Below, piece by piece: positions 6,969 to 23,107 of a DNA stretch of 64,000 nucleotides (position 1 is its first letter; each line of letters begins with the position of its first letter). Made by a program: the position numbers and the translations under genes. Below the pieces are notes generated by a model that saw nothing but the letters and a program-made list of their open reading frames with translations, did not search any database and was not told the origin of the DNA. This DNA comes from Tubulanus polymorphus (Eukaryota; Animalia; Nemertea), in NCBI RefSeq assembly GCF_964204645.1, contig NC_134031.1, forward strand, positions 4,278,001 through 4,342,000, given 5' to 3'.

Positions 6969-9455
6969 ATGGCGTCCACGAAAAAGAAACAGTTTCGGAA
7001 ACGAAGACAAGAGTCTTCTAGCAGCGAAGATGAGGAAGAAATGGGCGATCGACCTATGTAAATATGATCTTTTTCATTGTGCCTTTGATTTGGTTAAATT
7101 TTCACGTCGCTGAATCGTTTGGAATTTCACGGTTTTACCGTTTTGAACAGTTTTTTTTAGAAGAAACCTACTTCCGACGAGAGGTGGCAGCACCGGATGG
7201 TGACATATTTCAGTCATCTGTCAAAATTTGATACCCGTCCATGTCTTGATATTCTATTTACAGCCCGAAAGATTCGATTACAAATGATATAAAAGCGTTG
7301 CAGAAATTGAGAAAACGACCAAATGGCGTGAATGTTATTGGTTTGGCATTAGGCAAAAAATTACCAGATAATGAACCAAGGCTGGTGGTAGGCGTTAAAT
7401 CTGTTGTTTTATGTAACATAATAAAAAGAAAATACTGAATTCTGAAATGTGAAAATCTATGTGATTTTAGAACGATCCATTTAAGATGGACACTGGTGGA
7501 ATAGTAGATATGAAAGCGTTGAAAGAACAGTAAGCCTGATTCGTTTATTTGAGAAATTTAAGAAATCTGGTCAAACCTTGCTTACCATGAGCAGAATCCC
7601 TGCAGTGTTTGTGTACAAAATGTAATTATTCTTTAAAATGATTTACCTGATAATTCGTTGTGATTTCAGGGGTAAACTAGCAGATCCTGAGAGTATCGGA
7701 ACCTCCTTCGCGGCAGAGACTAACAGAAGAGATGAGGATGCTGATATGTAAGTCCGAAGTAAAACAAATCGTAAAATGGTTCGGTTTCTTAATTAATATT
7801 TGTCGTATTGACGAAGCAACTCTCTATGTATTCAATTATAGGTTGAAATATGTCGAGAAAGAATTAGCAAAGAAGAAGGGTTTAGTCTCGAAAGATGAGT
7901 CTCCAGAAAAGAAAAGGTTCGCATTTGTTGACAATATTCTTTAACATCTCTTTCATGATAGTATGATGAGAGTTTTATTTAAGAAGATGAATTAACATAA
8001 CATCGATTATAAGTTTAAAACCCACCAAAGTTTGAAAGATTGAAAGCAAATTTTATTTGTCAAAAATTAAAATCCAAAGACACGACAATTTGGGTTTGAA
8101 TTCTTGATAATTGATATTAGCTTTGAATCTTTTAAACTTTGTATATTATAACTTATTAACTATTCTCCACGTCAGAAGTCAAGTGGCTAAACGGCTACAG
8201 GGCCCAATGAAACGCCTTTATTACCACTGCTATCATATATACCTGGTATTTTTTTTCTTCAGCGTAAAAACTGTGAACGACGTATTGTTCGATGTTCCCG
8301 AACATTTACGAGCGACGACCATGAAACGCACCGAGGATATGTTGTCGAATCAAATGTTATCCGGAATACCAGAAGTTGATCTCGGAATTGAGTAAGTCAT
8401 TGAAAAAATAGTAGTCATGATTTATTGTCATAATTCCATGTAAGATATGCTCTTCGGCTTATACATAATGAGAAGCATGAATTGAAAAATGGTAAAACAA
8501 ACAGACATTATAAATAAGAATATTCAAGAATGAGCTATGGTAAAAGCGAGTGTTTTAATTTGAGATTTAAAAGCATCTAAGGATGGAATAAAATGTAATT
8601 GGTAAGGTATCGTATCTCATTCCAAAATGACACAATAGTAACGGCGACGAACTGCTAGTGATAGAACCTGCTGCAAGGTTAAGCCAAATTTTGTAGCGAT
8701 CTGTTTATTTTCGTCACAAGATGAAGAAATGTGTCTATTTTATAGCGCTAAAATACGTAACATCGAACAGACCGAAGACGCCAAACAGAAATTGATTGAA
8801 CTGAAAATGAAGAGAAACAATGAGAAAGTGTCCGCGTTTGTGCCGACTAATATGGCCGTGAACTTCGTACAACACAACAGATGTAAGTAAATCCATCGCA
8901 ACTGAATCGTCTCTTACCGGGAAACTTGGAAGACAAATCTTAGAACAATCGCAATAGAATATCAATCAAATTTCCATCGGATAATAGATTATCACTGATG
9001 TCAAATGAACGTCACTGGTCCCTATTTTGCTGTATTCGCTACAACCTTTTTTGTGCATTTAAAAATCTAATTTTAACCTCAGCTCATTCATTATTGTTTA
9101 AGAGCTTATGAAGTGATTCTATTTTGAATCTGCATGATAAATCAGTTTTCTATGGTAGCCGCTCAATGAGCTAAAATTTGTATTATTTCAGTCAATATCG
9201 ATGATAATAATCCCATATTGAAGAAAGAAGAGCCACCAAAACCGAAAATGCCACGCGTTGGAGATGCGGAATCAATATTTGGTAGGTTACGTAATATTGT
9301 GAGCAATTTGAATAGCTTTTTTGTCAAGTCGGCACCTGTGTCCTCAAGTTTTCGATTCGATTCCAGATCAAGAAGGCAGCAAGAAAAAAGACGGCGAAAA
9401 AGCGACGGATGATTATCATTACGAGCGTTTCAAGAAACAAATGAGAAGATATTGA
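6969..9455 (+). CDS. C9orf78: Splicing factor C9orf78 / telomere length and silencing protein 1 homolog
   Basis: Exons 6969-7057, 7264-7387, 7471-7529, 7670-7747, 7842-7916, 8263-8391, 8746-8882, 9192-9281, 9367-9455 join in frame. Motifs: LQKLRKRPNGV, DPFKMDTGG, FAAETNRRDEDADM, EDMLSNQMLSGIPEVDLGI, FVPTNMAVNFVQHNRF, EKATDDYHYERFKK. Confidence 0.95.
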
Positions 9456-10256
9456 ATCTGATCCGAATTCGACGTATTTAATCGTGCATTATCGCGTCAA
9501 TCGAGTGTAAAGGCTTGATTGTTTGTTTGTCGGAGTAGGGCAGATACCGTTGCTTTGGCATTACCGCCTTGGTCAGGGCTAAAGCTCGGCTCGTTTGTAC
9601 TCGGAAAAGCTGAACTTCGATATATTCGTATCGATACATTATTGTGTTCATGAAAGCAAGGCAGCGTGTCAGACAGTGAAGGTTGTAAATATTGTAAATA
9701 AATTTCGGAAATAATAGATCTGCTAGATGTACTTATTTTGCGATTTTTGATTCTAAATGGCCGGTAGCCGCAGGACTGAATTTACCCCATTTCTGGAAGT
9801 TGTTGGTGTGGTCGTGGTACTACAAGCCACGCGTTATATAGTACTCATTTCAAGTCCACGTTTCAATTAGTCTTTGAAGCGATCCAGTCCATATCGTGTA
9901 ACCTCATTACTCGCATATCCAGCATCTGGAGCCATTTCCACAGTCTCAGGTTGAGACTTAATTTATACAGACATCATAATGAGTTTTCTTTACAAAGACT
10001 TCCCTGATTCGAGAGTATATTCCGGAAGAATATAGAAGAGATGACCACACCTCCGAATGATTGAAGCAGAAAAAGTTCTTTTTTACATTTTCAAAATTTT
10101 TTTTTATTCTAAAAGGCTAAATGAGTACATAATTTATTAGATACAAACGTAGTGTATTAGATATACAGGAGTTGTGACCACTGAATGAGCGTTTATGTAA
10201 ATGAGATACAACCGACTTAACGAATTCAATACAGCCAGCGGTCGATATCATCCTAG

Positions 10257-10339
10257 ACCCAGTTCCACAGTTGTTCGTTTAGTTCATTTGAGTTTTCTAA
10301 TATCTAAGAATTTTAATCCACGTAAGTGGAGCCAGGTCT
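10257..10339. mobile_element. Short MITE (CCAGTTCCAC ... GTGGARC termini)
   Basis: Imperfect terminal inverted repeats; related copy at ~59496-59595. Confidence 0.45.
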
Positions 10340-11293
10340 TGGTTTAATAAGACTCGCTGCTTTGACTCGGTCGGTGTACTCGGCATAGATCTGGTTGTGC
10401 CGTTCTAAATAATACACAATACAAAATAAATATCATATATGTACAGCAAAATACAAACAAAAAATCGTACAAAATTAATAAATTATCAAATATTTTTACA
10501 TAATTTGTTTACAATAAATGTAAATATTTAAATATACATGGAGTAAACTACAAGCTACATGATGACGTAAATAAGTATACAATCTTAAATTCACAGAATG
10601 AATAACTGGCTTCGAAATTACAAGCACTGCAAAAATAACACCACGCACACTCAACATTTTTTTGAAGTTTTAAGTTAATTACATGTTTTTACTTTCGTGG
10701 TAGATTTCATTTGCGTTCCCGTTTAGGAGATCTGAGAAGGGCTTTCGTCTGCGCTACGACTAAAAAGCAAGGGCAATTTTGTTTCGGACATAATCAGACA
10801 TAATAGATGGTTCCCCGATGAATCTCCTCTACGAAGAGTCCCATGATACGAGCAGTTATCTCGTAGGCTAGAATGAACAAGGGGGAGACCTGTCTGATAT
10901 AATTCGTTGCAATTGATTAATACTGACTTAATAATCATGCTATATATATATAATATCTAGACTAGTACTGTCACTAATTAATTATTGGATACATGTATTT
11001 ACATACCTACATACAAGGCGAACGAATTCTCCAGAATTACGTTGTTTTGGATCTAAATCAATTCAACCCCTTTGATGTAGATTATTACTTCTTTTTCGAT
11101 CGTAATAGACGTAGCTAGGGTCATGCAGGTCACACGTATTTTGTCCACACGCGTCGTTTTGGCCGTCAGATGACCATCAACAGTGTCTTTTGCTTCAAGG
11201 CACACGACGGTCAACCTGACTGTCTGTGACGTCATGCGAGTGAACTCGTACGCTAGTCCAGACGACTCCAACAACGATTTTATTTTCTAAAAC

Positions 11294-12600
11294 TTTTCAA
11301 ACTTAACAATTTTTTTATAGATTTAGTAAACTTTTCAAGATGTTAACGATTTATTTCTATAGATCTTTATAGAATTTCTAATGGTGTCAACCTTTCCAAA
11401 CGAATCCATTATGCCGTTTCAGACGGACAGGATTCGAAATTTAAACTTTGAATCGATATATTTTTCTATAGTATTTTCAAACTTAACAATTCAATTATAA
11501 TTTAATATGGATATAAACTTAATAATGTTTTAACGAGTTATTCGGCGGAATTTCTCCCACCAAACAACGATTCATAAACTATGAATTAATATCTTTTTCT
11601 ATAGTATTTTCAAACTTAACAATTCAATTATAATTTAATATAGATATTAACTTTTAAATGTTTTAACGAGTTATTCGGCGGAATTTCTCCCACCAAACAA
11701 CGATTTATTAACTATGAATTAATATTTTTTTCTATAGTATTTTCAAACTTAACAACTACAGTCAAATCCCGCTTAATCGGGATCGGCTTAATCCAGATTT
11801 TATGATATAATTTAATTTGAATATAAACTCTCGAAGTAATTAACAATGTTTTGAAAGATATTCGTCGGAATTTCTCCCGCCGAATAACCTTTCAAAAATA
11901 AACTCTATACTATGTTTATAATTTCTTGATAATAAAATTGTTCAAACTTAACAAATATATCTCTATTTTAAAGATCTATATATTTCAACAACTTAGAAAT
12001 GGTATTTGATAGGGCTAATCAAAAGATGATTCGAAACTATCAAGTTCCATTTACGGAGCTTAAACTCTAAGCTATATTTTTTTCATAGAATATTCAAACT
12101 TAACAATTTTCAACTATATCTTTATATTCAATCTTTAGAATTTATGAACATTTAACGAGCTTTGAAACGGTATTCGAAATTGTCAAAATGACTCGTCATA
12201 ATAACAATTTTCGAATATCATTTCAAAAATAGACTTTATATATGTTTAGATTTTTATATATTATTTCTTTTAAAATTTTAAAACTTAACAATTGTTTTAT
12301 CATAATCTCTATTTGATTATACTCTAAAAATCTCAACAACTATAGTATATCTTAAGAATGGACGCCGGAAAAAGCGATCTACACACCTCTTTTCAATCGG
12401 ATATCATCTTAAAACTACTGAATTATAATCTTTAAATATATGTATTTTTTTTTCTTCTAAAATTCCAAAACTTAACAACATTTTCAGAGAAAATTTAGTA
12501 ATAACTTCAATCAACAACGTTTGAAAACAACAATCGAATCGCCGGGTGTTTGTTTCATCGAAAGAAACATCCAGCAGACATATTCAACAGTCTTTCGAAC
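11294..12600 (-). repeat. Array of 8 units, each a conserved (TT)CAAACTTAACAA motif plus a variable hairpin
   Basis: Motif at ~11298, 11478, 11611, 11744, 11943, 12095, 12280, 12467 (spacing 133-199 bp), with one hairpin per unit. Units 2 and 3 are near-identical 133-bp duplicates. Confidence 0.85.
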
Positions 12601-12720
12601 TTTAACTATATTATCGTTTTATGGTATTTTGATATTTTTCTCTAAGTTATTCATATACGATTTAGAAAAACATATCAACGTTTCAAGTATCTTTTACTTC
12701 TTAAATATATACATATTATC

Positions 12721-13570
12721 AGGACGGATATAAGATCGGACGGAAGGTCTTCTTTGGACGGATTAACTGGACGGGTTGGTTACCTACACTGCAATAGGTA
12801 TCTATTCATTCTACCTTCGAAGAATCCATATCAACCAATAAGAAAGAACATTTGAAATTTGCAAGTAACACCCTTCTTTCTATAGCTGAATGAATCCTTA
12901 AAATAATTGAAATGAATAAACATTTATTCTATGTACGTGGACGGAATAAGATAAATAGGACGGAAATCTAGCACCAATCGATACAACTAACTATATACAT
13001 AATATCTACAGATATTCTTATCACAGAATAGCGCGTTGGACGGATTACGATAAGTCGGGTTTTTCCGGAAGAATCCTGGCCGGACGCTTTCGGAAGATTC
13101 CGGGCAGTGTCGTAGCTTTGAGTGGGCGGAACGCGTAAGGGCTCGTTATGTCCGGATCACGAGAGAGAGGCTCTCGAGTTCCGAACTCGGAAGTTATTCA
13201 TTTCCGTGGGCAGTGATTAAGCTTCTTTCGCGGACGGATCTATTGAAGGGTAATTTGGATGGCAGTTTTTTTCTAAAAAATTTTTTTTGAAATACCCAAA
13301 TTTGTCTAAAAGATTCCAATCATCTTGAAATTTGGGAATTTGAATATTGGACGACCATGCAAAATTAGAACGAGATTATTCAACTGGGTATTTCAATGGC
13401 AGTTTTTGAGTTAAAAGTATAATTTTTCATGAAATAACCCTCAATGGCAGTGATTGGGCTATAGATATATAAGATAAGTCGACTGAGCACTTATCGGCGA
13501 CCTTGGTAGGTGAACCCACCGGAAACACCTAATCGTAACTCAGCGAGATAAGGACGGGCAAGTAAGGGCA
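12721..13570 (-). promoter_or_regulatory. Cluster of miR-184- and miR-34-complementary sites (on a minus-strand RNA)
   Basis: 7x GGACGGA plus 2x GGACGG and 5x GGCAGT(G), all in the same orientation; several also match the miRNA 3' halves. Confidence 0.6.
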
Positions 13571-16418
13571 AAGCCTTCAATACACCACGAGTAATCGAAA
13601 AGTGAATTGCTCGGCTAGAAGTTTTTTTGAAGTAATATTTTTTTTCAGTTTTTTAAAGTTGATTTTGCCCAGTATTGTATTCATATACAAATGTTACGAT
13701 TTGGTAATTGCCCTCTAAATCTGCCTAAATTAATTAGAGATTAACGGTAATAGTTTTTCTACAAAAGACTGGATTCGCCTAAACGGGAAGCATATAAAAT
13801 CTCACCACGATTTTGTTTCGTTTAAAAAACCACCTTTTACCGTATATAACTAATGAAATAATCAATCATTTCAAACTAAACCTGAGCATTGGAGTAAATA
13901 TTGAATACATAGACAAATTAATTACTAATACGTATTTACAATTGCATAAGTACAGCTGCGCAGCTTTCTACAGGCAAAATAACCAACGTTATGGTATTTC
14001 AGATCTGCGAAAGATATGATGTTTTGTTAGGTCTACTAAATGCGCACCGTTGATATAACATTGATATGAATGATATATTGGCGCGCCGAGGTTACACACG
14101 ACATAAAAAAAAAACTAGCAATTGTACTTCGCTTACGCGCAGGCATGAGCCCCCGGAGGTTGAGTTTGTTTTTCAATGTGGATAAAATCATTTATCTTTT
14201 GAAAACCTCTGACCGGGCCCAGTCACATTGCAAACTAATTAAAAACTATCTATCTAACAGTATTTACATATTTTCAGGCCAAGTAAAATAGGATTTTTGC
14301 GAATGATTTACACTCTAATAGAAAGCGTGATAGAATTATTATTTATCGTGATTATAGATTATTCGATATTAATATATGTTTTTCACCACCATTATCCAGG
14401 GCAAGTTTCATTAGCACCTCTGCGATAATAAATTAATATAACGCCTTTATACAAAAGCCATAATGTGTATAGCGAAATTAGAGGTGGTTTCTGAAATTGT
14501 ACCCGAAATTTAATACGTGAATGTTTGCATGACAATAACATATTGTCGTAGACGGGGAAGGGAATTTAGCCGATGGTTTCCTGAGGAAATTTGTCCCGCT
14601 TTTACACACGGTTGAAGGATTCTAGTTACCATGGGCCGAATCGACCTATTGATGCGCTATATTTGATGATGAAGTGTCCACGAATCGTCGCGTGTCAGCG
14701 CACTTTATACCGCGAGAGCTTCAATACAATGGCTGTTTACATGACAAAGATGTATATGAGTTTATACCGTACCGATACTTGAGAAGGTGTAACTATGGGA
14801 ATTGCGAATCGGGGTCGACATAATGACTTGACTCAGCTCGTCGTCTGCCGTCGTCGCCGGGCGCACTTCCTGGTTTTTATTCGGAGGAATATCATTCTCT
14901 CGCCAAATATCCGTGCTTGGTGGAGACGATTTTTTCGATAGTCGTTATTTCGGTTTTTCAGATCAATTCAAAAGAAGGCGACGAGTTTCGTTATGAAAAA
15001 TCTGTAAAGATAACACGTAGAATCGTTATATTTATGTTAAAAGAATGTGACGGAATTCTTCGTTTTCATCCGAAAAAAATATTTACGTAGATTATTTCAA
15101 AATGTTAATTAACAACAATTAATCGACCATTCCCTACGATTGATAATCAATCATGGACTCGTAATTCGAATATTCGTGGGAAATATCTAAGAACAAACAA
15201 TGACAGTCAATAGAAAAACGGGTTTCTTTTAGAAACGAATCATGATTTTGATTTTTGAGCTCAACGTCGTAAATAACGGAACGTATATTGTGATCTCGTC
15301 CGTTCTAGACAAAACCGATCCTTAATGGAACGAAATATTTCTGTTATTGTAAGGTAAACTCCCTATAAAGCATTTCCCATTCATGAAATTACGCCGGCCT
15401 ACAACATAAATCAAACATAATGTTGAATGAACCATGGTAACCGGTGCCCGACTCGCTGCCCAAACTTGAATCACACGTCGCATTCCAAACACTTGAAATT
15501 GTTGAACATGAATAGTACACTATGCCTCAGCAAAAACTCGGACAATTTCTAAGAATATTCAAAATGAAGTGTTTTTACTAGAGCTCTGGGGACAAACGAC
15601 GACATCGACCCTAATCGTGGGGCTCTCAATTTTCCTTTAGTTTTAATTGCACGCTTTATTCAAACTATTTGGAATAAAGTCTATGTTATTTCTTACAAGA
15701 GATGCATTCCGCGATATAAAGGTGCTCAAGCAGAATTAAATTCATCACTATCCTTCGAACATTTCTTTCTAGTTTATCAAGTGATACTATTATCTCTAAT
15801 GAAATTAAAATCATCGGAAACATTTTTGACTATACAACATTCTTTATACTGATTCATACTTTTATGAAAAGTGCACTTTTGATAGAAGTTCAAACGTACC
15901 TTCGGTTTGAATAAAAAATGGTAATAGTTCTTTTTTCGGGAGATGCGAAATCGAACGTCCGTCGGAGCGCATCAGTTGATATTGATTTTGAAAGAGCTTC
16001 GTTAGTAAATCTCAGTACCTGAAACGAAATATATCAAAATCAATTAAGTTGTTGTTCTTTAATCAAGTTCTAAGCTTCTTAGAACCCAGCGTTGAAAATA
16101 AAATGGACAGGATTGACAAATATTCCATCTAAATTGAATTACCGTGCAAAATTAATTTAATCGAAAGTTTATGTTACTTTAACATATAAGAACTGACATT
16201 TACATTTTCGTAAAGGGAATAATTTCCCGTTTGTTATCAGTAAAACAGTTGATATGTACATACCTGGCAAAAACTGAGGTGTTGGTTAGGATCCGGGTTG
16301 AAAACGGCTCCTGTCCCCCGGCAGGTTGATGGACCTGTCACGGGAGACAGGCGAGCCGGCCGTCTGCGCTCGCGACTGGAACGAGTCGTTGTGACACTTA
16401 GACACAGTAGGTCATCAC

Positions 16419-16572
16419 TATTTATATGGGACAGCAACCAAACAGGTTCTGAGCACGCATATTCGAAGTGAGGACTTGTTGCCAAGGGCTTTTGTTGGGT
16501 TAGCGAGAATCCGCAGGGCGCATTGAAAAGGCACGCGTGCTCGGGCGGGAGAGTCTTTAGAATGGTGATTGG
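16419..16572 (-). promoter_or_regulatory. Pol II core promoter (TATAAATA, GC box, CCAAT)
   Basis: Minus-strand TATAAATA at 16426-16419, GGGCGGG at 16543-16549, CCAAT at 16572-16568; splice donor ~160 nt downstream of the TATA. Confidence 0.65.
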
Positions 16573-17785
16573 TAATCGCGTAGATTCGTGCTCCTCGGTA
16601 AATTAAACAGTAAATTAACAACTGCTTTAATTACATTCACCCGTTATGCACATCACGAATGTTTACAATACTCAGCGTTAATTACGCCTTTACGAAAAAA
16701 CTTGCTTCAATCATCCAGCGTTTGCCTGAACAGAGCCCAGAATAGAAAATTAAGATTTGCGGAATCGTTAAGATACGTACGTATAGGATTTTGCCAAAAA
16801 ATCTTAAATCTGTGTTTTCTTAAATTCTCCATTTTCTGCGAGGAAAACCTCACGGAAAAATCGGTGAAAAAAGTTACTAATATACATATGTGAATTATCT
16901 CGGTGAGAAACGAACTCGCAGCAAATTTTGAAAACACATCTTATGTCCCCAGAACGTTTTAATGGTTCAGCTAAAATATATCGCGCCTGTATGAAAATAA
17001 CGAACGCAGTTTATACGAAGATGAAAATATACGCGCACACTAGCGGCTGTTCACGGACATGTATGGAGGGGTCAAAATTGTGCAATTTTTGAGTGGACGC
17101 CTACATTTATAATCGTCAAACGTAACTAGATTTCTCTGCAACGAATGACATCAGTTCATCTATTGTTATAGTATCTACTGAAGACGGGTTAAGGACACTG
17201 TTTGACGGCTGAAGGTTCTCTGTAGTTTTGGAAAAATCCGCTGCCGTTGAACCTATTCGTATTTGGTTCTAACTAGTAGCTGAATTTCGTCGTAAAGAGG
17301 TTCTACTGTACAGATATATACACATGAACCTGACGGCAAAAGTTCGGTTCTAAAGGTAATGATCTTCAGTGACCAGGTTTCGTTGTTCTCATATCAACCT
17401 CATTCCGCGTACTTATTTTCCGCGTCGCCGTTTCGTTGGATGCAAGACCAACAACACATGATTCACATTTTGAAAACTTTTTTATTTCACTCTTACAAAA
17501 TATAGACATTCGAATAAACAATAAACCCAGAAGATATAAAAAACCATATCCCTTAAGCGAGAGATAATGTATATCATTCAATAAATAACTGTATAAATAA
17601 CTGTATAGAAAACCACAACCCGAAGATGACAATTCAAGCAAAATACTAACAAAATACTGAGGTTCACGCATTCTCAATAGTATAAGCAAATAAACAAACT
17701 TCACATTCTCTTTTTTGTTACAAACTTTTAGTACTTGGATTTCTTTAAGCAAGTTTTCTTTTATATATATTCATAACAAGATTCA

Positions 17786-19589
17786 TCATTTGGATTTCTT
17801 GAGTAAAATGTGAAAAAGCGCTGCCAAACCCGCAGCCAAAATGGCCAACAAGGATGAAACGATAAAAACTAATTGCGTGCAATCATTTCCGTAACAATCA
17901 AAATTAGGTAACAATGGTGAGGTAGTTACATTGGAATAAGAGGTCATATTCGCGTAACTAGTTACCACATGTGAATCATAGACTTTACCGTAAATCAACA
18001 CGGTAACGTACAAAACAATAAATTCGACCATTTTCCCAACCCCGAAATGTAACCCCAAATGATCGTTACCGTAGACCTCGGCAAGAATAACGGGAACGAG
18101 GGTATAAGTAATACTGATAGCCGAGCCTAGTAAAATATTACTTATGATTACAGCAGCTAACGAACGCACGAAAAAAACCAGTACGATAAAGCCTAGTGCA
18201 CACATTGTGTAAGCGAACATAACGAATACATCTCTCGCTACACGTTTGAACAGGTAATCGGAAAGTGGACCGATCAAAACACGCATTACGAGTCCCGATA
18301 GGGTGTTAATCAGCACGATAACAGACACGTATTGGACGAGATGCACGGATTTCAACGTAGGTCCGATGTTGGTTACAAACATGGCCATCAGTCCGCCGAT
18401 TATGGAGAACCCCCACACAAGTGCGTGATAACTCGGATATCCTAATACGCTCAGAAAACCGCAAGCCGTCGATTTATTCGTATACGCCTGTTCAGCGGGA
18501 TGGTGCATCGGGCGTACGCGGACTTCCTCGCCGTCGTCGCTGCTATCGGAAGGAGAAACATCGGGAGAACCGGGAATTACACCCGCAGAACCCGGAATAA
18601 CATCGCGTGAACCGGTTTTATCGACTGGCGAACCGATACCGCCCTCATTATCCGTTAATCTTATGTGTTCATCGTTCGTTTCGTCGGGCGGTAACTCGTG
18701 AAAAAATAGCAACGACAAAATTCCCGTCACAGCCCCGAGTATCCACATCAATAAGATATAACCTTGCAGATCTTGTTTCGCTTCGTGTTTCAGGTGTCCA
18801 CGAACGTAGGCGCCGTTGTAGACGGCGGTGAAAACGAACAAACTCAACTGAAACATCGTGTCCATCACAGCAACGACTTTGGCGTTGTGACGGTTCGGAA
18901 AATTCCGGATGTTCGTTAACAACGCGGTTGTGTAGAGGTACGAAAAACCGTGGGCTGAAAAAAAAAGCGAAGATATCTTTGAAAGTATGCAGCATATGAA
19001 CACGGATGTCTTTATAAACGAATAGATGGTTTTTTCTATTTACGCAAACTTGTCAACAATAGGGAAATTCTGTTACCCGGTAATCAAATTTTCACGGAGT
19101 CAAAGACAGGAGCCAACCAGGATGATTTTAACATTGAAGCTTTTATCGAAACTTACTGATTTAGTTCATCCAATAGGTATTGTATTGAAATTATATATTC
19201 TATTAACTGCTTTAGGTTTACTTTAAACGTATCAGCATATACAGATCAAAATCCAGAGTAAACTGAACATTCATCGTAGATGTAAAATTCATTCATTCAC
19301 CGCATCGCACACATTGTGCAGCACATAATCAGTGAAATAAACAACACAAATCGATTATTACGATAGGGCCTACTTCACTTACCTAAAATACAGAAATAAA
19401 ATGCCATCAAGCCGTAGTGCTGCGAATAAAATACTTTCGCGGAGAATGTTGAATAGACAAGTCCGTATCCTAAGGTAACCAGTATGAGACCGATAGCAGA
19501 GGTAATCGTTGGCCCAGTTTTATCGAATATAAAACCAGAAAAAATTTGTGCACCCAATCCAAACATCTGAGCAGTAGATATCATTTCAA
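17786..19589 (-). CDS. Major facilitator superfamily transporter, MCH1/nodulin-like; first exon not located
   Basis: Exons 19383-19589 and 17786-18954. About 11 hydrophobic helices, MFS motif A variants GFIFDKTGP and GPLSDYLFKR, family-typical C-terminal CYGNDC. Confidence 0.8.
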
Positions 19590-21275: not shown

Positions 21276-22069
21276 TGCATTCAGACAGGACACATATCAG
21301 TGCCGGTCGACTCACTGATTCAACAACAAAATTCCGTAAAAATCTTCAGCATGTTGAAGTTGGCCAGTAATACGTAGAACTAGAACTAGAACTGGTGACC
21401 AATCAATAAATTTTGAATTGAATTAGAATTGTGACGGAGTTTAACGTTAATTACCATTCGTTTGAGTCATACTGAACGTCTTTTTCAGCGCCTGGCTATA
21501 GACGCCGAATACAAAAACACTTCCAGATATAAGTTTTACTATACAGCCCACGGTAAGACCGGTATACCGAAGAATCTTGCGATATTTCGGATTTTTCTTC
21601 AGGTAGGCCGCCATCTTATATCTCCACGCGACCGTGACCTTGTAGTATTTTTAGACGCTGCCTTAACCGCGTCGCCATTTCCTCGATCCTACCACCACGC
21701 ACCGGCATTTTTTCACTGAGCTGGTTTTCAGAGGTTTGTATACGCGAAATTCAGTAATTAATACTCTTAATTAGTAAATTAATCGATTTATTGTATTTAG
21801 GGATGTTTGCAGGGTTTTCTTCAGGCGCTTGGACCTCGATATTAGCCGTCATCGAAACTAATCAATTTTTATTCTTTTTTCTCTTTTTTAGCCTTTCATC
21901 ATGGAAAGGTAGCATCCTTGTTTTATATTTTTTTCTTTTTTTTATATTTTTTTTGCCCGTCCTTGATCAGACGACGTTGAAGGACTGACTGTGTGTGCGC
22001 GTACGTGCGAAAAGCTTCCGATCTCATCATCGCCGCCTCCGAGACTTGAGTGAGCCGCCACCGAGAAAG

Positions 22070-23107
22070 ATGAGTCTGCACAACGAAAACTGCAACTTAA
22101 TCGTGAACTACCTTCCTCAAACGTTGACCGACGACGAGTTCAAGTCGATGTTTAGCACGATCGGACTCGTGAAAAGTAGCAAAATAATCCGCGATAAGAT
22201 TACCGCGTACAGCTACGGGTTCGGATTCGTCGAGTTCGTCAAGCCGGAAGACGCCCAAAAAGCGATATGCACGCTCAGCGGTCTTCAGTTACAGAACAAA
22301 ACGATTAAAGTCGCGTTCGCGCGTCCGCCCGGCGAGGACACGAAAAACACTAATCTCTACATCCGTGGACTTCCGCATTGCATGACTCAGCAAGGTTTGG
22401 AAGAAGAGTTCCGTTCGTACGGCGGAATCGTCCAGTGTAAAGTGCTGACGAACGAATCGGGCCAGTCGAAAGGCGTCGGATTCGTCTTGTTCGAAAAGAA
22501 AGATTCCGCGGAGATCGCGTTGAAAGAAATGAACGGCAAAACGTTGATGGGCGCCGCCGAACCGCTACATATCAAATTCGCCGAAGACAACGCCAAGAAG
22601 GTCAGAGCGCCATCTATGCCGTATCATCATCACCATCCTTACCAGCCGATTCCGCGCGCGCCGTACGGTTGCGGAAGCGGGTACAACAGCGGCCCGCCCG
22701 GTCCCGTTCGCAACCAAGGCAACCGTTTCAATCGGTTCAACCCGATGTCGAATAGCTACAACGGTTCGAACGGCGCCGGCTCGATGGCGACGCCGGGCAT
22801 CGTCGCGCCGCCAATGAACGCGCCGAATTCGACGAACGCCGAAGGCCACGTTTTGTACGTTTACAACGTCGGTACGCACCCCGACGATCACATGATCTGG
22901 TCGTTGTTCGGCACGTACGGAATGGTGTTGAAAGTGAACATTATTCGCGACCACACGAAAGGCATCTGTAAAAATTACGGATTCGTCACGATGGCCAACT
23001 ATAACGACGCGTGCGAGGCGATCAACGCATTGAACGGCACGTACTGTCTCGGTAATCACCCGTATCCGTTGCAAGTGTCTTTCAAAACGACCAAGGCGGA
23101 AAATTAA
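22070..23107 (+). CDS. ELAV/Sex-lethal-family RNA-binding protein, three RRMs, intronless CDS (345 aa)
   Basis: RRM1 NLIVNYLPQ...SYGFGFVEF, linker FARPPGEDTKNTNLYI, RRM2 KGVGFVLF, hinge RFNRFNPM, RRM3 LYVYNV...KNYGFVTM...LQVSFKT. First in-frame ATG at 22070. Confidence 0.92.
   Translation: MSLHNENCNLIVNYLPQTLTDDEFKSMFSTIGLVKSSKIIRDKITAYSYGFGFVEFVKPEDAQKAICTLSGLQLQNKTIKVAFARPPGEDTKNTNLYIRGLPHCMTQQGLEEEFRSYGGIVQCKVLTNESGQSKGVGFVLFEKKDSAEIALKEMNGKTLMGAAEPLHIKFAEDNAKKVRAPSMPYHHHHPYQPIPRAPYGCGSGYNSGPPGPVRNQGNRFNRFNPMSNSYNGSNGAGSMATPGIVAPPMNAPNSTNAEGHVLYVYNVGTHPDDHMIWSLFGTYGMVLKVNIIRDHTKGICKNYGFVTMANYNDACEAINALNGTYCLGNHPYPLQVSFKTTKAEN

Follow-up and report, generated by a model that had tools for sequence, protein, structure and literature searches.

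The window analysed was a 64,000-nt stretch of the genome of the nemertean Tubulanus polymorphus. Between a C9orf78/Hep_59 gene and a gene for an MFS transporter, it contains a three-exon long non-coding RNA (lncRNA) of ~5.1 kb, transcribed from the minus strand (Table 1).

Table 1. Features of the lncRNA locus. Positions are those of the window.
Feature	Position	Strand	Details
Core promoter	16420–16576	-	TATAAAT 16426–16420; GC box CCGCCC 16548–16543; CCAAT 16572–16568; pattern scan
Exon 1	16264–16395	-	5′ end predicted from TATA position; RNA from ~16376
Intron 1	16019–16263	-	245 nt, GT..AG; joint 16015→16261 (cut +3); checked in sequence
Exon 2	15900–16018	-	119 nt; RNA contig
Intron 2	15002–15899	-	898 nt, GT..AG; joint 15001→15900
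Exon 3 (long terminal exon)	10115–15001	-	~4.9 kb; RNA contigs to ~10238; 3′ end predicted, AATAAA 10138–10133
Extended miR-190 site	14062–14084	-	carried by X2 record 6, which spans both splice junctions
miR-34 site cluster, five sites	13102–13453	-	7mer-m8 at 13102 and 13208; 8mer at 13445; 7mer-A1 at 13260 and 13397
miR-184 site cluster, nine sites, one orientation	12721–13576	-	seed-match listing; plus-strand positions opposite miRNA nt 1: 12721, 12737, 12755, 12768, 12938, 12957, 13037, 13231, 13551
Pumilio-type elements (UGUAHAUA), six	10438–14268	-	first bases 14268, 13940, 12999, 12713, 11003, 10445
Array of eight units	11159–12478	-	133–199 nt each; repeat comparison
Dispersed-repeat fragment	11756–11801		inserted in array unit 5; at least 18 copies in the genome; 18 other places, 78–96% identity
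G+C-richer segment, marginally stable fold	11045–11275	-	MFE -70 kcal/mol, z -2.75; 1 of 200 shuffles as stable

A spliced minus-strand transcript

An RNA-derived contig of 1864 nt (record 6 of run X2) aligned to the window in three blocks, 13369–15001, 15900–16018 and 16264–16300, and continued for another ~76 nt, to ~16376. The two segments that it skipped are bounded by CT..AC on the plus strand, that is, by GT..AG on the minus strand; inspection of the sequence placed the exon 1 donor, CAG followed by GT, at 16264/16263. The three spliced exons and the minus-strand polarity that the initial annotation had read from splice signals were thus present in RNA. Both introns were empty in X2; in intron 2, its depth was 0 over 15101–15700, a region where the DNA-like run X3 has contigs. 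The proposed TATA box, GC box and CCAAT box were all found on the minus strand, and the RNA contig ended roughly 45–50 nt downstream of the TATA box; transcription probably starts ~30 nt downstream of it.

Beyond record 6, exon 3 was covered by X2 contigs at 12615–13367, 11594–12609 and 10301–11490 (plus 63 nt), with breaks at 13368, 12610–12614 and 11491–11593 and an uneven depth of 30–306. Contigs of X5, a run from a second study, covered 10301–11293 and 12680–14850, which is exon 3 territory only. The transcript therefore extends beyond the ~14 kb point: the contig that bears the junctions reaches 13369, and the abutting ones ~10238. Record 6 alone holds the splice junctions, the miR-190 site, two miR-34 sites and one miR-184 site, in agreement with the earlier proposal that all modules belong to one RNA. 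The abutting contigs, separated by the breaks given above, suggest that this may also hold for the remaining modules. Internal AATAAA signals were found within the transcript model by a poly(A) signal scan, and none of the RNA-run contigs over the locus contained a back-splice joint.

The transcript is single-copy and has no credible coding capacity

The longest ORF starting with ATG in the joined model encodes 71 aa and lies ~4 kb from the 5′ end; exons 1 and 2 contain no ORF of at least 30 aa. Exon 2 contains the first ATG of the transcript, which opens a frame of only 27 codons that ends in exon 3. No Pfam family was significant for any of the ORFs, and an Rfam search gave no match at E ≤1. 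The interval, previously described as ORF-less, is thus transcribed and spliced, with its strand set by the splice sites, and lacks credible coding capacity, as expected of an lncRNA.

The exons might instead belong to the upstream MFS gene, as an alternative 3′ end or UTR, or to an unrecognized protein or micropeptide gene, as its UTR; the miRNA sites would then be ordinary 3′-UTR sites. The RNA and the MFS gene are on the same strand, the MFS stop codon lies at 17786, and the true 5′ end is beyond what the contigs can show; the 27-codon ORF could be taken for a micropeptide. However, an AATAAA belonging to the MFS gene itself lies at 17486, and the RNA contig stops ~1 kb past that signal, close to a TATA box accompanied by a GC box and CCAAT. 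An MFS isoform extending into these exons would have its stop codon upstream of two exon junctions, making it a substrate for nonsense-mediated decay (NMD). Indirectly, X2 contains only ~0.59 of the words of 9000–18900, nearly all from the lncRNA contigs; the MFS exon is therefore poorly covered and the lncRNA deeply. Since, in addition, no ORF has a Pfam match, a UTR origin of these exons is very improbable.

A genome search indicated that the interval is single-copy except for a 45-nt piece at 11756–11801. This dispersed-repeat fragment provides one of the two hairpins of array unit 5, and the loose contig ends at 11768 and 11801 come from other copies of it. The possibility that the 10–14 kb segment is a multicopy transposon, satellite or viral insert was rejected, as no copies other than those of the 45-nt piece were found elsewhere.

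Clusters of miR-184 and miR-34 sites

The nine miR-184 sites of exon 3 comprise three 8mers, four 7mer-m8, one 7mer-A1 and one 6mer. The 7mer-m8 match, TCCGTCC, occurs seven times in exon 3 against 0.21–0.37 expected (P = 2.6e-9 at 0.21); it ranks second in enrichment among the 7-mers of this exon and, the array motif apart, first. The five miR-34 sites (three CACTGCC and two 7mer-A1) compare with 0.22 expected (P = 3.4e-6). Word statistics that made no reference to miRNAs ranked CCGTCC as the top 6-mer of 12600–13600 and ACTGCC as the second independent one. When a panel of 53 conserved seeds was scored, only miR-184 (P = 6e-9) and miR-34 (P = 3e-6) stood out. Both clusters listed in the initial annotation therefore exceed chance, and its reading of their polarity was borne out: all 14 sites are in the orientation of the RNA, and the plus strand has no site for either miRNA. 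The genome encodes both miRNAs, miR-184 in four hairpins and miR-34 in one, located on C6. Each is thus matched by more than one seed site beyond chance on the transcribed strand, an arrangement consistent with a decoy.

Pairing to the 3′ halves of the two miRNAs was no better at these sites than with shuffled 3′ halves. Most sites in CDR1as/ciRS-7 and sponge lncRNAs likewise lack extensive 3′ pairing. CDR1as and linear sponges such as linc-MD1 are, like the present lncRNA, non-coding RNAs with dense, same-orientation seed matches to a conserved miRNA family. In contrast to CDR1as, the RNA described here is linear and spliced and has far fewer sites (CDR1as has ~70), with two families side by side. 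It shares no sequence homology with these vertebrate RNAs, comes from another phylum and has a function that is predicted from sequence.

Several sites arose by local duplication: the two-site module at 12721/12737, for instance, is repeated at 12938/12957, and repeat family D12 contains three of the miR-34 sites. The site counts consequently overstate the number of independent events. This raises the question of whether the locus is real but functionless intergenic transcription, the word clusters having arisen when short units with chance seed-like words were tandemly duplicated. The locus does contain duplicated site modules and repeat families, GGACGGA runs elsewhere in the genome derive from (GGAC)n microsatellites, and the probability that a duplicated 18-nt unit carries a match to some conserved seed is estimated at roughly 8%. 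Against this, the sites match three different miRNA families, the sequence between them does not resemble microsatellites and has diverged while the seeds were retained, and all 14 seed sites share the orientation of the RNA. Polymorphism over the cluster is also low: differences between run and reference were ~5-fold rarer in 12680–13627 (2 in ~900 nt, X5) than in flanking exon 3 (~1.0–1.3%), and none of the polymorphic differences falls on a site. Together with the evidence from the miR-190 site and the array given below, these observations make functionless transcription quite unlikely.

The segment 13040–13240 is G+C-rich and contains GC-box-like and ETS-like words, so that it may have a role at the DNA level.

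A single extended miR-190 site

The miR-190-complementary site noted earlier was found as a single extended site with the pairing geometry of a trigger of target-directed miRNA degradation (TDMD). An A lies opposite nt 1 of the miRNA, nt 2–7 are paired, nt 8–9 are mismatched, and ~13 bp of 3′ pairing follow. The duplex of the 3′ part has an energy of -14.4 kcal/mol. Full shuffling of the miRNA gave as good a value in 0.07% of cases, and shuffling of its 3′ half in 0.6%. Pairing of the kind associated with TDMD thus exceeds chance at the miR-190 site (P = 0.0007–0.006) and does not do so at the miR-184 and miR-34 sites. Two miR-190 hairpins are present in the genome, on C12. The site is an independent, unrepeated event (P below 0.01), which again argues against by-products of duplication.

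Known TDMD triggers include Cyrano for miR-7 and Drosophila Marge (CR43432) for the miR-310 family. The miR-190 site shares with Cyrano, Marge and Kah the seed pairing, the central mismatches and the long 3′ helix; it differs in that its seed match is only a 6mer plus A1, in that the accompanying miR-184 and miR-34 sites lack significant 3′ pairing, and in that ZSWIM8/Dora-dependent decay of miR-190 is here a prediction. Sites for different miRNA families on one transcript are also found in Kah, a ‘trigger cluster’ for miR-9b and miR-279 (bioRxiv 10.1101/2024.12.11.627053).

A motif–hairpin array and Pumilio-type elements

Downstream of the miRNA sites, the repeat comparison confirmed an array of eight units. 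Each unit opens with the RNA word UUGUUAAGUUU, which never varies, and continues through A/U-rich sequence into a hairpin of ~14–29 bp whose sequence differs between units. The 11-nt motif (TTGTTAAGTTT in the DNA) occurs in all eight units, its 11 columns being invariant in an alignment with a mean identity of 50%. The 14-mer of the array occurs 24 times in the genome (268 Mb), six times here and 18 times as isolated singletons. For seven of the eight units the minus strand gives the better fold, and six have z ≤ -2; the predicted folds leave the conserved core unpaired and place variable sequence in the hairpins. This pattern indicates that the 11-mer is under constraint, and its persistence in units whose identity has elsewhere fallen to 50% is a further point against functionless transcription. 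When the array was considered as a pri-miRNA host, the hairpin arms were found to be unconserved between units, Rfam provided no match at the threshold given above, and one hairpin of ~29 bp was present in unit 7.

Six UGUAHAUA elements were counted on the transcript against 1.07–1.20 expected (~5-fold, P about 1.5e-3), and one on the plus strand; the Pumilio sites proposed previously are therefore present at a modest enrichment. None of the six falls within the eight array units, and a NORAD-type Pumilio platform was rejected on this ground. NORAD and the present RNA have in common a long unspliced terminal exon, tandem diverged units made of a short conserved motif and a hairpin, and an enrichment in UGUAHAUA. 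However, the elements here are few, the unit motif is not a Pumilio element and there is no homology; given the modest enrichment and the position of the elements outside the units, the analogy is a loose one. Arrays of the Xist A-repeat type also have ~8 short invariant cores in divergent U/A-rich spacers with local hairpins, but they differ from the present array, whose core is predicted to be single-stranded and whose hairpins vary, and their context is unrelated.

Of the two large folded domains described initially, 11045–11275 was upheld marginally, while 10715–10945 was not unusually stable (z -0.53).

A candidate platform for miRNA control

Taken together, the data are best accounted for by an lncRNA that serves as a platform of miRNA sites, a decoy for miR-184 and miR-34 and a decay trigger for miR-190; we give this reading, whose functional part is deduced from the sites, a probability of about one half. 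The TATA promoter would drive the lncRNA, and complexes of AGO with miR-184, miR-34 and miR-190 would bind the sites in its terminal exon. The two clusters would titrate their miRNAs, the miR-190 site would trigger TDMD, and the motif–hairpin array, with the Pumilio-type elements, would probably recruit further RNA-binding proteins. That the lncRNA is a hub in the full sense, titrating miR-184 and miR-34, destroying miR-190 and docking an RNA-binding protein on its array units, is unlikely. The MFS locus of Lineus longissimus, the sole relative compared, has no such site cluster; with 29% protein identity, it is probably not orthologous.

The direction of control might also be the reverse. The lncRNA could be a heavily targeted transcript that is cleared from cells expressing miR-184, miR-34 and miR-190, its own function lying elsewhere, in the array, the Pumilio-type elements or the act of transcription. 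The site statistics cited for the platform also underlie this explanation; most of the sites are plain seed sites lacking significant 3′ pairing, like ordinary repressive targets, and the invariant 11-mers point to a separate function. Nevertheless, 14 sites for two families in 850 nt, plus a TDMD-like site, are far denser than target regulation needs. Moreover, the RNA was present in two samples from whole animals or large fragments at depths comparable to or above those of the coding neighbours, indicating that it is not efficiently cleared. We regard mere targeting as somewhat unlikely.

Control of miRNAs by endogenous RNAs is known from vertebrates, Drosophila, herpesviruses and plants, examples being CDR1as, Cyrano, NREP, Marge and Kah. 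In the literature searched, no paper connected TDMD or ZSWIM8 with molluscs, annelids or nemerteans. The locus provides a concrete, expressed, single-copy candidate for a miRNA decoy or decay trigger in a ribbon worm, along with an unexplained element, the array of conserved 11-nt motifs and hairpins. As the sequences of miR-184, miR-34 and miR-190 are almost unchanged across Bilateria, the candidate is directly testable, even in heterologous cells. If the lncRNA does act as a hub, it would give Lophotrochozoa their first described miRNA decoy or TDMD trigger, and lncRNAs of the trigger type would have arisen convergently in all three bilaterian superclades.

Structure and expression of the minus-strand transcript

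The candidate lncRNA, which lies between the Hep_59/C9orf78 and MFS genes, is a real, non-coding and locus-specific transcript. Logan contigs from four sequencing runs were compared with positions 10301-16300. One contig of run X2 (1864 nt) joined 13369-15001, 15900-16018 and 16264-16300, plus ~76 nt beyond, and omitted 15002-15899 and 16019-16263. On the plus strand the omitted pieces have the ends CT..AC, that is, GT..AG on the minus strand; the donors read CAG/GTATGT and AAG/GTACGT, and the acceptors ...TTCAG/G and ...TTTACAG/A. X2 depth in the introns was nil (zero over 15101-15700, a region where the patchy, DNA-like run X3 has contigs), and X2 behaves like RNA. The three spliced minus-strand exons proposed in the initial annotation were thus recovered from a contig crossing both junctions.

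Downstream on the minus strand, further X2 contigs nearly abut one another (12615-13367, 11594-12609, and 10301-11490 with 63 nt more, which reaches ~10238). Breaks of 1-5 nt occur at 13368 and 12610-12614, and the one at 11491-11593 falls in 133-nt tandem copies that are 92% identical; all three are as expected of de Bruijn contigs. Run X5, from a separate study (2014; 19 Mb of contigs in all), covered 10301-11293 and 12680-14850 and left the introns empty, which fits a transcriptome; one was published for Tubulanus polymorphus in 2014 (PMC4986456). Run X6, guessed to be RNA, had no contigs on the compared stretch and is evidence neither way. The exon-bearing X2 contigs and the X5 coverage therefore provide RNA support, from two studies, for all three exons, for their strand and for an exon 3 that continues across each of its modules; contigs of this kind do not fix exact ends, the strand of junction-less pieces or continuity in one molecule. 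X2 depth varied strongly, from 31 over 11726-12609 and 60 on the contig with the junctions to 141 over 12615-13367 and 306 over 10301-11490. The 3′-most kb was thus covered 5-fold more deeply than the spliced 5′ part, which could reflect 3′ bias, a stable 3′ fragment, or an internal start that gives a shorter isoform. The transcript also contains AATAAA and ATTAAA signals internally.

The predicted TATA/GC/CCAAT promoter held up, all three words being found on the minus strand. A start near 16395, ~1.07 kb past the MFS poly(A) signal, fits an X2 RNA contig that ends at ~16376, ~45-50 nt beyond the TATA box. The 3′-end signal is likely the AATAAA at 10138-10133, and the model comprises exons of ~132, 119 and 4890 nt (~5.1 kb).

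Open reading frames crossing exon junctions were computed on locally joined exons, while database searches used exons and ORFs separately. Exons 1 and 2 of the joined model contained no ATG ORF of 30 aa or more, and the longest in the lncRNA (71 aa) lies near its 3′ end. Pfam gave no significant match for ten ORFs from both strands, and Rfam none at E ≤1 over 9000-18000, in agreement with the description of the interval as ORF-less. In exon 2, the first ATG begins a putative 27-codon ORF that runs over the exon 2/3 junction into 15001. A terminal coding exon was considered for the open frame 10316-10432, which follows an AG, and ruled out, the RNA being continuous across it with no splice joint there. 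That the exons belong to a UTR or to a micropeptide gene is highly improbable.

Coordinates of the features at the lncRNA locus and of the cognate miRNA genes
Feature	Position	Strand	Remark
Hep_59/C9orf78 gene	ORF pieces up to 9412	+	flanks lncRNA locus
MFS_1 transporter gene	stop 17786; AATAAA 17486	-	flanks lncRNA locus, opposite side
CCAAT	16572-16568	-	promoter word scan
CCGCCC	16548-16543	-	promoter word scan
TATAAAT	16426-16420	-	promoter word scan
miR-190 site	14062-14084	-	pairing with genome's own miR-190
miR-34 sites (n=5)	13102, 13208, 13260, 13397, 13445	-	seed matches
miR-184 sites (n=9)	opposite plus positions 12721, 12737, 12755, 12768, 12938, 12957, 13037, 13231, 13551	-	seed matches
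miR-184 two-hairpin cluster	C12:1911059, 1911989		L012/L013
miR-184 two-hairpin cluster	C7:15051132, 15051870		L014/L015
miR-190 tandem pair, 479 nt apart	C12:524043, 524522		L024/L025

Genomic context and copy number

In the assembly that contains the window as C7:4278001-4342000 (268 Mb, 77 contigs), the last exon of the MFS gene showed 100% identity to XP_074654983.1 of T. polymorphus, a palaeonemertean ribbon worm. The miR-1992 family is known only from Lophotrochozoa, and exact matches to it were present in the genome, in two copies (C1:25379119 and C1:25379396). Sequence matches to a variant with one mismatch form four tandem copies at C7:4272952-4273862, ~4.1-5.0 kb ahead of the window start. 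At 21995-23107 (plus strand), ~5.5 kb from the promoter of the lncRNA, lies a gene for an RNA-binding protein that resembles ELAV/Hu or TIA; its single-exon ORF encodes 370 aa with three RRM_1 domains (E 2.7e-54). The sole relative reached via the MFS protein, Lineus longissimus, was uninformative: the 10-kb flank downstream of its MFS locus (29% protein identity) contained neither Hep_59 nor the site cluster. The lncRNA locus may already figure in the NCBI genome annotation as an unnamed ncRNA.

The initial annotation had envisaged that the 10-14 kb segment might be a dispersed transposon. Both halves of the interval proved to be single-copy genome-wide, bar a 45-nt dispersed-repeat fragment at 11756-11801, and the 14-mer of the repeat array occurred 24 times in 268 Mb, six of them at the locus and 18 as scattered singletons, which speaks against a transposon or satellite. 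The ~45-nt repeat forms a small hairpin and has at least 18 copies of 78-96% identity; other copies are transcribed, as contigs of X2 and X3 with loose ends at 11768 and 11801 show. The reversed 14-mer, AAGTTTGAATTGTT, occurs ~484 times, against 24 for the forward one, and is therefore part of some abundant repeat family unrelated to the lncRNA locus.

Sites for miR-184 and miR-34

Leaving aside the array-motif words, the most over-represented 7-mer of exon 3, read on the RNA strand in an unbiased count, was TCCGTCC, the 7mer-m8 match of miR-184 (seven against 0.21 expected, P 2.6e-9). Within 12600-13600 the top two independent 6-mers were CCGTCC (nine against 0.08 expected) and ACTGCC (five against 0.12), which match the seeds of miR-184 and miR-34, respectively. 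Only these two miRNAs stood out in a test panel of 53 conserved seeds, which is a lead and not a database (miR-184, eight canonical sites, P 6e-9; miR-34, five sites, P 3e-6), and the plus strand contained zero sites for either in this test. The two clusters of the initial annotation are thus seed matches beyond chance and on the RNA strand only, with P values that overstate independence, several of the sites having arisen by copying: the pairs of sites 12721/12737 and 12938/12957 are duplicate modules, and three miR-34 sites fall in the repeat family D12.

The site clusters might be a neutral by-product of such local duplication, a reading that we consider distinctly unlikely; low polymorphism offers weak, independent evidence for constraint on them. 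In X5, ~1.0-1.3% of covered positions differed from the reference over 10543-11293 and 13628-14850. Over 12680-13627 (~900 covered bases) there were only two differences, one at 12798 and the other the loss of 1 nt at 13537, against ~10 expected (Poisson P ~0.002); X5 coverage excludes the miR-190 site. Differences in X2 and X3 (e.g. at 13186) likewise miss all the sites.

Additional 3′-supplementary pairing at these sites was not robust. For miR-184, shuffling the flanks gave P 0.005 but shuffling the 3′ half of the miRNA 0.15-0.32, and for miR-34 the latter test was not significant (P 0.85-0.9). From their sequence, the sites are best described as putative seed-type sites. The cluster as a whole was not unusually structured (z -0.55). 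That the plus strand carries the decayed remains of a miR-184 gene cluster was ruled out: the sites are 13-19 nt apart at their closest and lack complementary arms, the genuine hairpins of T. polymorphus being spaced by 740-930 nt. An origin from a (GGAC)n microsatellite, which accounts for most GGACGGA triplets elsewhere in the genome, was rejected as well, the spacers being unrelated to GGAC. Positions 13040-13240 form a G+C-richer island in exon 3, with palindromic CGGAAG/CTTCCG words (four against 0.12 expected) and GGGCGG; the island might act at the DNA level (internal promoter, enhancer) or contribute to the structure of the lncRNA.

Cognate miRNA genes and the miR-190 site

All cognate miRNA hairpins were good: four for miR-184 (two of canonical sequence on C12, and a pair on C7 whose nt 9 is A, a G-to-A change in the mature sequence of that cluster), one for miR-34 on C6 (mir-34 model, 48.7 bits) and two for miR-190 on C12. 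The 3′ half of T. polymorphus miR-190, ...ATAATTGG, differs from the Drosophila form. The miR-190-complementary site of the initial annotation shows extended predicted pairing: an A opposite nt 1, nt 2-7 paired, nt 8-9 mismatched and 13 bp more to the 3′ end (-14.4 kcal/mol). Equally good sites were obtained with 0.07% of shuffled miRNAs and 0.6% of 3′-half shuffles. The site sits on the splice-junction X2 contig, and its predicted geometry is that of TDMD triggers.

Repeat array, Pumilio elements and folds

The motif-plus-hairpin array (11159-12478) was borne out. Each of its eight units (133-199 nt) opens on the RNA with UUGUUAAGUUU; 11 alignment columns are invariant in all eight, against a mean column identity of 50%. 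Every unit has a hairpin of ~14-29 bp at a similar offset, and in unit 5 the dispersed-repeat fragment provides one of two. The minus strand folds better in seven of the eight units, mainly via G:U pairs, and six reach z ≤-2 (60 mononucleotide shuffles per unit). The motif differs from Pumilio elements, and it could be matched neither to a miRNA seed nor to a protein motif already known. Six UGUAHAUA elements occur on the RNA strand (1.1-1.2 expected, P ~1.5e-3) and one on the plus strand. None of the six lies inside an array unit, so the proposed analogy with NORAD, whose Pumilio elements sit in its repeat units, fails in this respect. As for the two large folded domains, 11045-11275 was marginal only (z -2.75) and 10715-10945 was ordinary (z -0.53).

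Possible function

Chance is very unlikely to account for the seed-match excess for two ancient miRNAs together with the miR-190 site and its extended pairing. The competing readings differ in the direction of regulation. We give a probability of about one half to the lncRNA acting as a decoy for miR-184 and miR-34 and as a TDMD trigger for miR-190; that it is merely a strongly repressed miRNA target seems rather unlikely. By mechanism, a decoy and trigger would come closest to CDR1as and linc-MD1, which have clustered seed sites in common with the lncRNA, and close also to Cyrano, Marge and the Drosophila Kah trigger cluster, which has triggers for two families on one transcript (bioRxiv 10.1101/2024.12.11.627053). 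None of the five has sequence in common with it. Within the literature covered, the search returned no TDMD trigger for miR-184 and no paper tying TDMD or ZSWIM8 to lophotrochozoans. The locus is a candidate miRNA-binding lncRNA in a phylum without known precedent for one; it is expressed, and the candidate is open to direct test.
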